A stretch of DNA of 64,000 nucleotides from Phallusia mammillata (lineage: Eukaryota), in assembly GCA_965637545.1 (NCBI GenBank), contig OZ281494.1:2790001-2854000 (forward strand). The letters run 5' to 3'. Below the pieces are notes generated by a model. It saw nothing but the letters and a program-made list of their open reading frames with translations. It did no database searches and had not been told where the DNA came from. Below, in pieces: positions 10,354 through 63,026 of this stretch. The translations under genes were made by a program, and so were the position numbers. The first letter of the stretch is position 1, and each line of letters opens with the position of its first letter.

Positions 10354-12051
10354 ATGAATTACATTGTAGTTTTTCTGCTGACATTGGCTGTGCTCCATGG
10401 AAAAGTTATATTTGCAGGTACTTCGTATATTTTTATTCTTTCGAATTTTCATGCATTGCATCAATGCCGATACCATTAGCGGAACCAGACTAAACCTGCG
10501 AACAAAGAAACTGACTCATTTTTTATGTCTAACAGACAAACATTCGTCATGTCTGGAATTACTCAACAGCTCTACCGAGCGACCGATGAGTGGCGTCTAC
10601 ACTTTGCACGATTCAAACGGAATTCCTTACATCGCATACTGCGACATGATCACTAACATGGGAGGTTGGACGCTGATCGCTAGCATTCATGAAAACAACA
10701 TTAGGGAACGTGAGAACAGCAACGGATACTGCACCCAGGGCGACCGGTGGTCCAGCCAGCAGGGAAACTCCCCAATTTTACCGAAGGGTGAAAACACTTG
10801 GGCGAATATGAACACCTTCGGTAACGTGGTGTCGGCGACCAGCGACGATTACAAAAATCCAGGTTACTTCGACATCGACGCCGGAGATTTGATGATTTGG
10901 CAGGTGGGATTTGTTTGTTTCTATTAGTGATGTACCAAGTATTCTGTTCATCAAATTCATTCGCCTGAATCGGCTGTTTTTTTACACATTCAGTTTTGGC
11001 CAAATAGTTTGTCACCATTTGGCCAAAATCGAAACGTTAGGATCGCAAGACCTTAACTTATGTCTTTTATGCCTTACAAGGTTCTACGTTGATGAAACAC
11101 TAATGTTTGACTGGTAGTAAAATATTCGTTTGCTTAGCCAAACCGGTCTGACGACGGTGCATCACAGCCTTCTACTTCTTTAGCTTATAGTGTTTTGCTT
11201 GTAAAGTAGGTGTTTAATGAAGTACAACGCAGTAAACAATTCAAACAACATGTTGTTTATGGTGCAAACAACGAAATGGATTAACCGAACTTAGGTGGGT
11301 GCAAAAGTCACACAATGACTTTGCGTTTTGTTGTTTCAATAACTCTGCTTTATATTTTGATTGTTAAAAGTAGATTTTGTTGCAAAATTGCTAGGTTCCA
11401 AACGAGACACCACTACAGGATTGGAGAACGTCTTCCTACCTTCGATATCGAACTGAGAACAGATTTCTCGACGCGTACGGAGACAAGGGCAACTTGTATT
11501 CGCTCTACAAAGCGTTTCCTGTCGAATCTGGTATATACTCTTGGCCGGACGACATCGGTCCTAGTGAACCTGTGGTGTTTGATGAAGGGTCGGTGGGTGA
11601 TGTGCTTCAGCATTTTGGGCCAACTGCTCAACCGTATCTTACACCGGGATATATTCAAGTAAATATTTCCTCAAACGTTGTTGTAAAGCAAATTTGCAGC
11701 TGTTCAATTTCCGGTTTGTTGAAATTCGCCACTTCAGTCATTTCTTAACCTCATGATTGTTTCAACTAAAAGTATTTTGTCGTGTTGCTAAAACTGATTT
11801 GTTTGTAGTTTAGAAACCTCTATGGGTACGATAAGGACGTAAAAGCGGCATACGCTCTATGTCCCGGAGTGAAAGTCAGCAACGATTTCACTAACGCCCA
11901 AACGGCTTGCATCGGATCAACCGGATACAACGCCTTTATAGGCCACTGTGGTGATTTTGCTGGAATGGCTGTTAGTGGATATGGTGCGGGAAAAGGATAT
12001 AGTGTCGATAAGCTGATGATTGAATCGACCTTTATGTTGTTTTACCGTTAA
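10354..12051 (+). CDS. ITLN: Intelectin A, intact, ~312 aa; exons 10354-10417, 10536-10903, 11395-11658, 11809-12051
   Basis: Signal peptide [21 protein letters not shown], fibrinogen-like [38 protein letters not shown] and C-terminal CGDF...MLFYR. All introns are GT-AG and the 939-nt CDS is open. An alternative in-frame ATG lies at 10336. Confidence 0.95.
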
Positions 12052-13278
12052 GGTCATTCGTGTAAAGCAAATAAATAAACAAACTTCATGGTGATCTGTG
12101 AAGCTTTAAAACGGCAGAAGAAACCTTTAGGGTTCAATACAGACTTTTTAGCGGAATTTAAATTAACCTCGTATGCTTGTTTCTTGTTTCTGTCCTACTG
12201 AATCTGTATCCAAATTCCTTCATACATTTTCTAAATTGTTTATTCCTAATGGTTTTGACTGCATAAATCAAAATCGTTTAAATGTAAAATAATGATAATG
12301 AGTCTGCTGTCTTTTCAAGGAACATGATCAGTGATGATCATTGATCACTAAAAACTTAAACAACATCTACTAAAAAAACCAAAGTTTATCTAAAGGACTT
12401 AACAAAATTCCTTCCGACCAACTTTTCACAAAGACATTATCGTCACCATCTGTATGTGTTAAGCCACATATCTTTGAAAACCAACATTGTTATGTCACAA
12501 AATGACTAATACATGGATAAGATTGTTGGAGAAAAATTCTCTTCTCGTGTTACTTGTGCATTGTTAAAGAAACATTGTTAGGCCCAAGAGAGACATACAC
12601 TACCAACATAAATTTGTACATGGAGGCTTAAAATCTAAAAAAAACCATAAAGTTGAGTTACGAACAAAAAAACGCTACCAAAAATAATATTAGAGAAATC
12701 ACCGTAATAAGAACAAAAAACATTTTCACAACGAGCAGGACCGTGACAAAAAAAACATGATTATTATTTTACCCACAAACCTAATGCTTTACGCAACTAT
12801 TTGGGAACGTGTGGTTTTATTATCGGAATTTTAATTTAAATGTTGATACGCGTATAGGGTGGCTTTTGTTCAACAAAGTTTTGACATTTATTGTACAATA
12901 TATTGTTTTAAACTACAAGTTGATTTTTGGTTGGCATTTTTATGTATTTGATTCTATGCTTGCATGTTCACTTATATCGAAAGTTTTATGATTAAAAAAG
13001 ATTTATCTACGTTATGCATCTCACCAATAGACCAGACAGGTTGTTAAAGATTAAAACGTGACAAAAAGTTCAGTAGGCAATTTCCGTTACATGTATTTTA
13101 TAAAAACTGCATCTTTTCCACTAACTAAACACCAAGTATTCTATAAAATACAGCCACTATTACTCACATGTGGATTTAATTATAGCAAGTACATTTAACA
13201 ACTGTCAAAAACATTTCGATGGATATAGGCATACCCAATGTTTACCAACATTTGTAGTTATTTTTTTTTCTGTTACAG

Positions 13279-13779
13279 TGTTTGGTGTTTACTCTTGGCC
13301 TGATGGACCCAGTGAACCTGTGGTGTTTGATAAAGGGTCGGTAGGTAATGTGCTTCATCATTTTGCTCCAAGTGTTCAACCTCATCTTACACCAGGATTT
13401 ATTCAGGTTAACGTGTTTTTGTGGCCTATATTAGCATAAATTACACTATTTGTTGTAACTTTGGTTGTTGAAATTTATTTTAATCACGACCAAATTCCTT
13501 TATGTAATAAATTGAAGTATGTAATAAATTTGTTTGCAGTTTAGGACTTTGATAGGCATCGGCACCGCAAAATCGGCGTATGCTTAATGTCCTGGAGTAA
13601 AAGTTAGCAATGATTTTGTTGATGTTGAAACCGCTTGCATAGGATCAACCGGATTCAACCACAACGTGAAACACTGTGGTGATTTCGCTGCGATGGCTTA
13701 CAGTGGAGTTGGAACGGGAAACGAGTGGAGCGTCGATAAGCTGATGATTGAAACGACCTTTATGCTGTTTTACCGTTAA
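13279..13779 (+). pseudogene. ITLN: Intelectin fragment B (3' part of exon 3 plus exon 4)
   Basis: Exon 3 remnant ends at 13406. Exon 4 (13540-13779) has an in-frame TAA at 13585-13587. Exons 1-2 are absent. Confidence 0.92.
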
Positions 13780-60623: not shown

Positions 60624-61640
60624 CCTTGTAACAATCCAATATTTTCGACAATATGTTTTCCCTATTTTAAGTGGCCCTCACAACAAGCAAATTCTCACGA
60701 TCTTGCCATCAGCAATATTTTATGTGTATGTATACAATGCACTCGCATTTGTCAAATTTCGTAATTCACAAGATTGGTGGTCCAATGATTAGAGTGAGCA
60801 ATGTGGTCAATCAAACATGGCACCTATTGTTCCAGTAAAAGAAACAGAAAGACATCTAAGCATTCATTACAGCAAAGGCGGTAATTAAATACGTACAGAA
60901 ACATCCTCCAATTTATTGAAAAGCGAACCAAACTAATGTGAGGTTTTTGAAAAGTTTTTGGTTCCATGACATTCATCTCAACGATTTAACAACATGGGAG
61001 TTGTTTCAATCTTCTGCTTATTGACGCTCCATTCTGGTTTGTATAAAAACAAGACATAACCGAAATATAAAGGTATTGGCATGGCCTGCTGTTATTTCTA
61101 GTTGAAACAAAGCAAGTCGTTTAAGGACGACTAAAAACATAGCTAACGTTTGGTTTAGGACACAGTACAGAGGTCGTATTACGATTCCAAACGGCAATGA
61201 GAAAAATCACTTGCTGTTCCAAATCCAAAACATTTAAAGGTGAATTGCGTATTGCGAACAAAACAAACAAACTGTGATTTTTACAATTTTAAGACGGTCT
61301 CTGTCCGACTGACAAAAAACAAACAAAAATGACGGCATTATAAAACTTGTACTCAACAACATAATATTATATAATTATAAAGTTGTTTGTTTTAATGGTG
61401 AAATTGTTGCAAGTAATGTAGCCATGTTTTCACAGGCGTAAAGTAATTTTTATGCTATTCATAAAATATACGTCCTCATGTATAGTGGTTTATTAATATC
61501 CAAACGCTAAATTTTATGTCTTTTGTCAACAGCGTAAATGCGAAACAATGCACTCTCCAGCAAACCTGATAAAATTAAAATCACACCACTCAATTTTGAC
61601 TAACAATTGAGTTTTATTCGGTTTATGTTGTCAGAATTAT

Positions 61641-63026
61641 TTAACGATAAAACAACATAAAGGTCGTTTCTATCATCAACTTATCGACGCTCCAACCTAT
61701 TCCTGTTCCAACTCCACTGAACGCCATCGCAGCGAAATCACCACAGTGTTTCACGTTGATGTTGTGTCCAGTTGATCCAATGCAAGCCTTTTCACAAGTT
61801 TCGAAATTGTTACTAATTTTCACTCCGGGACAAAGAGCGAATGCTCCTCCCTCATTCCCTCGCAAAGCTCTAAACTACAAACAAAATGAATAAAGATTAA
61901 AGTTTTACTCCGTTATTAGATTTTAAAAGATAACGAGTCAGCCAATAGATGTCAAGTAATATTTCAAAATCCATACCCATTATAGCGATGAAATTGATCA
62001 TGTATTTACCTGAATGTATCCTGGTGTAAGATAAGGTTGAGAATTGGGTCCAAAATGCTGAAGCACATCACCCACCGACCCTTCATCAAACACCACAGGT
62101 ACACTGGGACCGTTGTCGTCAGGCCGAGAGTAAACGCCAGATTCGACAGGAAACACTTTGTAGAGTGAATACAAGTTGCCTTTGTCTCCGAACTTGTCAA
62201 AAAGTCTGTTCTCAGTTCGATATCGAAGGTAGGAAGACTTTCTCCAATCCTTCAGTGGCGTCTCGTTAGGAACCTACATTGATTTTACATTTTTAAATCA
62301 AAATACCCTCAACAACATGACCTAGCAGTTTTTAAATTTGCACGTTATGTTGGCTATATAGTTTTCGAATTTTAAGTGCTTCATATCTAAGGTTTTTTTT
62401 AACAGCAAACGACGACAAAATGCTTTATGATCAAGTGACAAATCCCACCTGCCAAATCATCAAATCTCCGGCGTCGATATCGAAGTAACCTGGGTTTTTG
62501 TAATCGTCGCTGGTCGCCGACACCACGTTACCGAAGGTGTTCATATTCGCCCAAGTGTTTTCACCCTTGGGTAAAAGTGGCGAGTTTCCCTGCTGGCTGG
62601 ACCACCGGTCACCCTGGGTGCAGTATCCGTTCTCCTCGATGTTGTTTTCATGGATGCTGGCGATCAGTGTCCAACCTCCCTTGTTAGTGATCATGTCGCA
62701 GTATGCGAGGTAAGGAATTCCGCTTGAATCGTGCAAAGTGTAGACGCCACTCACCGGTCGCTCGGTGGCGTTGTTGAGCAGCTCCAGACATGACGAATGT
62801 GCATCTGTTGACAAAAAGGAACATGCATTTGCATATATTCTTATTTGTAATATTTTTTGTCTAAAAGTTTTTTGTACTTGTTAGATTTACACGAACTCTG
62901 TACCTGTTAGATTAACTTGATTATTTGCATCAAGCAAATGCGGTATTCAAACAATCATATACCTGTGAATGGAACTTTTCCACAGAGCACAGTCAATGTA
63001 AGCAGGATAAATGGTAGAATATTCAT
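61641..63026 (-). CDS. ITLN: Intelectin H, intact, ~305 aa, near-identical paralogue of E; exons 63026-62963, 62804-62449, 62273-62010, 61874-61641
   Basis: Open 918-nt spliced CDS with GT-AG introns. About 7 aa differences from E. Confidence 0.95.

Follow-up and report, generated by a model that had tools for sequence, protein, structure and literature searches.

An intelectin gene cluster of Phallusia mammillata with a uniform scaffold and divergent loops at homologues of sugar-contact positions

Background

To our knowledge, every intelectin that has been studied biochemically (human ITLN1 and ITLN2, mouse Itln1 and Itln2, XEEL, XCGL-1 and the lamprey lectin) binds sugar via one surface calcium ion, with a few residues next to it tuning the specificity. 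The only tunicate intelectin for which we know of biochemical data is the plasma lectin of Halocynthia roretzi. In human intelectin-1 the surface calcium ion chelates exocyclic 1,2-diols (PMC8185196), and the box formed by W288 and Y297 is crucial for its specificity. A single change at 288 or 297 re-tunes the specificity of an intelectin (PMC12800186, PMC9434060): the aromatic box is opened by W288A in mouse Itln2 and by Ser in place of Tyr297 in human ITLN2, which also has Gln for E274, and the specificity of both has shifted to galactopyranose (PMC12800186); Xenopus XCGL-1, with the non-canonical box F288 and N297, shows calcium-dependent galactoside binding (PMC9434060). In the mouse cluster each paralogue except Itln1 differs at one contact residue at least, and all ten calcium residues are conserved (PMC8324875). 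The Halocynthia lectin is galactose-specific and, as far as the work of Abe et al. (1999) is relayed in two later papers (PMC9682848, PMC9434060), an ascidian intelectin homologue that acts as an opsonin and binds galactose. Here we analyze a tandem cluster of intelectin-like genes in the tunicate Phallusia mammillata. It lies in a stretch of 64,000 nucleotides, below called the window (assembly GCA_965637545.1, contig OZ281494.1, positions 2,790,001-2,854,000 of the forward strand), and all coordinates are those of the window.

Results

Intact genes and pocket residues

For the gene models, the exons of the first copy served as tblastn and blastn queries, and the splice sites were then inspected. 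The letters A to H denote the copies found; the outer bounds 10354 and 63026, taken over from an initial annotation of this DNA, correspond to the ATGs of A and H. Four intelectin-like genes in the window are intact (A, D, E and H), each with four exons, an open frame and GT-AG introns. Gene A is located on the forward strand at 10354-12051 (exons 10354-10417, 10536-10903, 11395-11658 and 11809-12051; 312 amino acids). The other three are on the reverse strand: gene D at 16262-17772 (exons 17709-17772, 17125-17480, 16737-17000 and 16262-16504; 308 amino acids), gene E at 20249-21639 (exons 21576-21639, 21061-21416, 20618-20881 and 20249-20482; 305 amino acids) and gene H at 61641-63026 (exons 62963-63026, 62449-62804, 62010-62273 and 61641-61874; 305 amino acids). 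Genes H and E are 98% identical, introns included, and judging by this similarity H is a recent duplicate of E. All four proteins have a signal-like hydrophobic N-terminus that is followed directly by the recognition domain, without a collagen-like extension.

HMMER comparisons with solved structures matched gene A to XEEL (4WMO, E=2.6e-76), to human intelectin-1 (4WMQ, E=7e-74 to 9.5e-74, with residues 26-312 of A aligned to the chain end) and to the lamprey serum lectin (E=1e-65), all three matches covering the whole recognition domain. By homology the window genes are intelectins, or X-type lectins, across the whole carbohydrate-recognition domain.

Pocket residues were compared in human numbering, which was checked by script on the letters of the HMMER alignment, and the list of sugar-contact residues was taken from PMC8324875 and PMC12800186. 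The anchors ALC, CIGS, CGDF and SVDK...FYR place positions 260-263, 288 and 297 without a gap, and HMMER and two MAFFT runs agree on them. At 243/244/260/262/263/274/288/297 human ITLN1 reads N E N E H E W Y. The corresponding residues are K V N Q T N V Y in gene A, K I D P A N A L in gene D (the least canonical copy), N E T E T N I W in gene E and N E T E K N F W in gene H. Two pseudogenes that retain exon 4 read T A D E T N Y W (B) and T A E E T N Y W (G). The ligand-calcium set N260, E262 and E274 is thus complete in none of A, D, E or H, and no copy combines H263 with the aromatic box at 288 and 297, H263 being absent from all. The initial annotation had reported a loss of the canonical sugar-binding residues. 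This stands for H263 in all copies and for E262 in A and D, but E262 is kept in E and H and an aromatic residue at 297 is kept in A, E and H. N243/E244 is probably kept in E and H as well, to judge from the alignment. Since E and H are near-duplicates (98%) and B and G are pseudogenes, the window holds three pocket versions (A, D and E~H) rather than six.

The four variable loops are encoded by exon 4, which in gene A (11809-12051, forward strand) spans 243 nucleotides including the stop; these loops carry codon indels. The loop between C265 and C280 counts 14 residues against 16 in human and contains no acidic residue in any copy; all six exon-4 copies share an invariant Asn together with the G-S-T-G that flanks it. 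In the larger alignment this invariant Asn stands opposite F272, and an Asp of A and D stands opposite E244. Most of the initial readings of this region were borne out: the residues listed for A, B, D, E, G and H at 288 (V, Y, A, I, Y, F), 297 (Y, W, L, W, W, W), 262 and 263 are all correct by alignment, as are the loop strings and a loop two residues shorter without Glu. The three length classes of exon 4, stop included, were likewise recovered (243 nucleotides in A and D, 240 in B and G, 234 in E and H), and the difference of about 24 of 80 residues between A and G amounts to 23 residues and one gap column.

The scaffold around the pocket is well kept. HENN, GDRW, SDDY and CGDF were described as invariant and are so wherever the exon is present, and the C-terminal FYR is present too. 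The structural calcium motif HENN...G(Y/H)CTQGDRW is found in A, D, E and H and in pseudogene F; the consensus for intelectins is HENxxxGxCTxGD (PMC9682848). Its spacer is longer than in vertebrates, by two residues in D, E and H and by six in A, as in other tunicates. Gene A carries a four-codon insertion in this spacer, between HENN and GYCTQGD (RERENS against EE or EA), and the silent divergence of exon 2 peaks there too. Cysteines at human 251, 265 and 280 and in SSC, YCD and YCT are present in the window copies according to the alignment. Cys259 is absent from all window copies, as in nearly all tunicate homologues surveyed. An additional Cys occurs in E and H at human position 261 (exon 4, 20249-20482 and 61641-61874), beside the retained E262 and with no obvious partner; it may be free or engaged in an intermolecular bond.

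Variation on sugar-contact positions

Among A, D and E, 65 of the 291 mature positions vary and 15 have three states. Variation affects five of the six canonical positions (P=0.0024), and four of the 15 three-state columns fall on these six (P=6.6e-5). With the eight carbohydrate-binding positions of PMC8324875 the outcome is alike: seven vary (P=1.4e-4). Of the seven residues that differ between E and H, two are canonical (263 and 288; P=0.0065) and one more lies at 259; three of the four exon-4 replacements between them are those at human 259, 263 and 288. All four variable blocks of exon 4 hold published contact residues. By homology, the variation is indeed aimed at binding-site positions.

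Divergence by exon and selection tests

Nonsynonymous (dN) and synonymous (dS) divergence and their ratio (omega) were estimated by exon with the Nei-Gojobori method for pairs among the intact genes. Exon 4 has a dN of 0.15-0.27 against 0.03-0.08 in exons 2-3, but its dS is raised two to six times as well (0.56-1.42 against 0.22-0.34). Consequently, omega is 0.19-0.30 in exon 4 and 0.12-0.26 in exons 2-3. The synonymous excess in exon 4 is significant (p=0.0014 for A-E, 5e-8 for D-E), whereas the ratio of nonsynonymous to synonymous changes barely differs between exon 4 and exons 2-3 (p=0.57, 0.04 and 0.36). Exon 1 is more diverged than exon 4, with a dN of 0.35-0.50 and an omega of 0.5-1.0. 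The description of exon 4 as 'hypervariable' is not borne out by these figures: dS is up as much as dN, and another exon diverges further. It looks as if exons 2-3 are unusually homogenized rather than exon 4 hypermutable.

Inside exon 4 two classes of codons can be separated. Pairwise omega is 0.2-0.6 in the loops and 0.01-0.08 in the framework, where dS is 0.45-0.94. The exon-4 framework is thus under very strong purifying selection, and the genes are therefore maintained. In exons 2-3 an omega of 0.05 applies to 75% of the codons. Site models M1a and M2a were compared with our own codon likelihood implementation (GY94, F3x4). For exon 4 of all six copies, M1a places 60% of the codons at omega 0.02 and 40% at omega 1; for the four intact genes these classes are 57% at 0.01 and 43% at 1. 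The fast class (omega=1) includes seven of the eight contact positions, and the frozen class includes the loop Asn. Tree length per codon is about 1.8-2.2 substitutions in exon 4 against 0.5 in exons 2-3. A class with omega above 1, sought with the site-model test that the initial annotation had proposed, did not become significant in exon 4: M2a adds nothing for the six copies (likelihood ratio test 0.59, p=0.74), and for the four intact genes it assigns 37% of the codons to omega 1.6 (likelihood ratio test 2.05, p=0.36). Positive selection is neither needed nor shown.

Signs of probable gene conversion

The introns and flanks of A, D and E are near random identity, differ strongly in length and are nearly unalignable. 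The coding sequence is patchy in its silent divergence, with 0.09-0.25 at codons 25-60 and 97-216, a bump at 61-96 and a climb from about codon 217, ahead of the border between exons 3 and 4. In pseudogene G, 124 nucleotides of exon 2 match A, E and H at 97.6% identity, and identity to the same genes is 75-80% in its exon 4. This pattern suggests that the low dS of exons 2-3 probably results from gene conversion. Codon bias was considered as its cause and rejected, since exon 4 of these transcripts has a dS of 0.45-0.94 in framework codons under equal constraint.

The youngest pair shows a stepwise change in identity. E and H (19945-22600 compared with 61345-64000) are 97-100% identical over a stretch that extends from over 1 kb upstream up to nucleotide 45 of exon 4, 94-96% identical in the rest of exon 4 and 85-90% in the next 300 nucleotides downstream, after which homology ends. 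Differences amount to 10 of 234 nucleotides in exon 4 against 25 of 1452 elsewhere (p=0.02). As the non-coding 3' flank is even more diverged, this excess suggests history, namely the edge of a conversion tract, rather than selection; from the identity profile it looks like a tract boundary lies inside exon 4. Exon 4 of pseudogenes B and G was tried as a donor of the E/H differences and dismissed: the ten sites are scattered, without a block match to B or G.

Relatives among intelectins

Identities to vertebrate and tunicate intelectins are 42-56% among the best 120 matches listed. The best relatives among them are intelectins of Ciona intestinalis and Clavelina lepadiformis, at 50-51% identity, and the lectin of Halocynthia roretzi is not present by name among these 120. 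An exhaustive representative search with exon 2 of E gave nothing above 66% identity. Searches of public proteins gave four word-sharing candidates for residues 226-312 of A, none of which scored, and no candidate for exon 4 of E; as these are word-index searches, such a blank is weak. A maximum-likelihood tree groups A, D, E and H in a clade of their own (support 100/99), apart from both Ciona/Clavelina clades; they therefore represent a lineage-specific tunicate expansion. The sister of this clade (90/88) is a gene on Logan contig L001 (protein P0064). It is found at L001:1544-2905, on a 2.9-kb contig from run DRR090687; the called protein runs into the intron after exon 3, and the final coding exon lies downstream. 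The sister gene keeps Cys259 and has G/H/Y at 260/262/263, N288 and Y297.

We surveyed 150 homologues with the C-x-G...CGD motif. E262 and H263 are near-invariant in the surveyed vertebrates; across the survey position 260 is N, D or H, and positions 288 and 297 are mostly W. Amphioxus (P0149), Styela (P0153), one Ciona gene (P0156) and three Clavelina genes likewise retain the xEH motif. Of eight named tunicate proteins six have a loop of 13-14 residues, as has every surveyed tunicate homologue whose short loop is of the CIGS type, and Styela and one Ciona protein have 18-19. Human Tyr297 is a minority state, since XEEL and most vertebrate intelectins have Trp297. Hence, the short loop and Trp297, earlier counted as non-canonical features, are so in comparison to human only: going by the surveyed proteins the loop is lineage-typical in tunicates and not peculiar to this cluster, and the Trp is usual in vertebrates. 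With the window genes, the sister gene on L001 and the Ciona and Clavelina clade described below, non-canonical pockets recur in tunicates. A literature search found no paper describing non-canonical tunicate intelectin pockets.

Broken copies and neighboring elements

Half of the copies in the window are pseudogenes (B, C, F and G). Pseudogene B (13283-13779, forward) consists of the second half of exon 3 and exon 4 (13540-13779, 240 nucleotides) with an in-frame TAA at 13585-13587 in exon 4, and lacks exons 1-2. Pseudogene C (14990-15791, forward) has an exon 1 remnant, an exon 2 that contains a stop and has lost an internal part, and the beginning of exon 3, without exon 4. Just upstream of its exon 2, at 15217-15335, lies a short repeat that occurs in many contigs of RNA-labelled runs at a word depth of about 145, with unrelated sequence on both sides; it is probably a dispersed, transcribed repeat. 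Pseudogene F (23781-24706, reverse) retains exon 1, an open exon 2, the first ~37 nucleotides of exon 3 and only the last ~90 nucleotides of exon 4. Pseudogene G (27229-28520, forward) has lost 53 codons of exon 2, among them the structural calcium motif (HENN..GDRW), and its exon 3 contains a TAA at 28095-28097; exon 4 (28281-28520, 240 nucleotides) is open.

Smaller pieces were found on the reverse strand. These are a fragment of a further copy at 3893-4145 (exon 1 and the first ~89 nucleotides of exon 2), a weak exon-4-like fragment at 18793-18864 (54% identity over 26 amino acids, E=0.06) and an orphan exon-3 fragment at 60417-60623, which is open and 94% identical to exon 3 of E and H. 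The last adjoins retroelement remnants at 56776-60168 (reverse), a stretch of raised GC content (42-45%) with broken open reading frames: a DUF7041 gag-like one (E=2e-22), an RT RNase H (E=1e-28), an aspartyl-protease-like piece and a weak integrase piece. Open reading frames of 321 amino acids at 6384-7349 (forward) and of 160 amino acids at 19299-19781 (reverse) gave no Pfam match. A further match of 202 nucleotides (93.6%) links 18502-18703 and 60797-60998.

Discussion

On balance, and with modest confidence, we consider the cluster to be an old tandem family of secreted tunicate intelectins, made up of a signal peptide and a carbohydrate-recognition domain only, that evolves at two speeds, the pocket differences reflecting old, loosely constrained divergence. 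Exons 2-3, which code for the fibrinogen-like core and the structural calcium motif, stay alike among paralogues, synonymous sites included, and exons 1 and 4 are far more deeply diverged. Within exon 4 the framework, about 60% of the codons, is almost frozen; the other 40% or so change near the neutral rate and lie in four loops with the homologues of human 243/244, 260-263, the 274 loop, 288 and 297. Repeated gene conversion may hold the dS of exons 2-3 low, with the diverged introns and the loop region blocking its spread. The three pockets would be expected to bind different ligands. A, with N/Q at 260/262 and no carboxylate in the site, and D, with D/P, presumably cannot hold the ligand calcium as human intelectin-1 does; a contact of the calcium-diol type may persist in E and H, which have E262, probably N243/E244, and Trp297.

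A number of points count against this reading. The introns 1-2 of A, D and E are not homogenized, contrary to simple long-tract conversion, and the case for conversion is drawn from divergence patterns. Positions 243/244 and 274 depend on gap placement, on which the aligners disagree. The site models have low power, with four intact sequences and silent sites in the loops near saturation, and positive selection is therefore unproven rather than excluded. Transcripts give little guidance: RNA-labelled runs of the same species, searched for reads on 10300-16290, yielded only a 61-nucleotide contig in exon 2 of A with three mismatches, besides matches to the short repeat near pseudogene C, which speaks neither for nor against expression.

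The diversified glycan-recognition repertoire proposed in the initial annotation survives in part, as variation is concentrated on contact positions over a conserved scaffold; it is reduced to three pocket types, with B and G pseudogenes and no significant signal of positive selection. Its stronger form, in which pathogens drive positive selection on pocket residues and so create paralogues with new glycan specificities, seems to us unlikely. The enrichment of variation on contact positions is strong (P=6.6e-5 and 9e-6), the replacements in exon 4 of the youngest pair fall mainly at 259, 263 and 288, the variable loops carry codon indels and, for the intact genes, M2a proposes omega 1.6 for 37% of codons. 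Moreover, intelectins belong to the lectins of innate immunity, and pocket variation of a similar kind occurs in the mouse cluster (PMC8324875). Nonetheless, M2a is not significantly better than M1a on either dataset, the loops have a pairwise omega of 0.2-0.6 and synonymous divergence has risen alongside. The exon-4 excess between E and H, being even stronger in the non-coding 3' flank, has a historical explanation, and the window has just three pocket types.

Alternatively, the sugar site might have been released from constraint. The calcium-diol site would then be disused and its loops drifting, with the fold kept for another role, or some copies would be decaying. Several observations fit: about 40% of the exon-4 codons, including seven of the eight sugar-binding positions, agree with omega=1, H263 is gone everywhere and E262 in A and D, pseudogenes already make up half of the copies in the window, no expression was found in the RNA-labelled runs and the sister gene on L001 is non-canonical too, with other residues again. 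Against it stand the strong purifying selection on the exon-4 framework (omega 0.01-0.08) and on exons 2-3 (0.05 for 75% of codons), the invariant loop Asn with its G-S-T-G, and the aromatic or hydrophobic residues that persist at 288 and 297. Also, a Ciona/Clavelina clade with the motif PSQS keeps that motif, which argues that a non-canonical pocket can be conserved and hence functional. We regard this scenario as doubtful, to about the same degree as pathogen-driven selection. Wrong gene models or misalignment could in principle mimic the loss of canonical residues, and the aligners do differ at 243/244 and 274. This is very improbable, however: every intron has GT-AG splice sites and every frame is open, the anchored positions 260-263, 288 and 297 are gap-free and agreed on by HMMER and MAFFT, and DNA runs of the same species contain 71-80% of the sampled words of the window.

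A more far-reaching version of the two-speed reading may be offered as speculation, a little less probable to us than either the selection or the relaxation scenario. Conversion restricted to certain exons would keep the scaffold uniform and shield the specificity exon, at least A and D would have abandoned the calcium-diol mechanism of the characterized intelectins and be calcium-independent or non-glycan binders on the intelectin fold, and the exon-4 pseudogenes B, G and F might serve as a loop reservoir. Paralogues differing in binding loops are common in immune lectin families. At the level of sequence the cluster would seem to be a clean, small example of a gene family in which scaffold and specificity have separate histories.

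Comparison with known systems

The window genes share the fold family, calcium motif, SDDY, CGDF and C-terminal FYR with human ITLN1 (4WMQ/4WMY/6USC) and XEEL (4WMO/4WN0). They differ from both by lacking the N-terminal oligomerization segment and C259, and by replacing W288 with V, A, I or F. The mouse Itln1-6 cluster, including Itln2, and human ITLN2 likewise combine tandem paralogues and pseudogenes with contact-residue variation (PMC8324875, PMC12800186). In the window genes, however, the calcium-site positions 260 and 262 vary too, and divergence is much older (dS up to 1.4). XCGL-1 provides a precedent for pocket variants that remain lectins, but according to its authors' model it binds ligand via the site calcium, whereas A and D of the window are without E262.

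Further parallels are found among tunicates. Ciona P0001 and P0014 and Clavelina P0002 and P0146 also have a loop of 13-14 residues and Trp297 and lack E262/H263 and N243/E244, carrying PSQS or PSYA as their motif. Yet this clade (100/98) has a collagen-like N-terminal extension (373 amino acids) and a motif that is conserved across genera, while the window genes consist of the recognition domain only and vary among themselves. Both the window genes and this separate clade alter the calcium-holding residues themselves, and the window genes in this respect go further than the mouse cluster. If ligands are still bound, these proteins would reveal to what extent the intelectin pocket tolerates rebuilding, which bears on lectin engineering and on immunity in invertebrate chordates.

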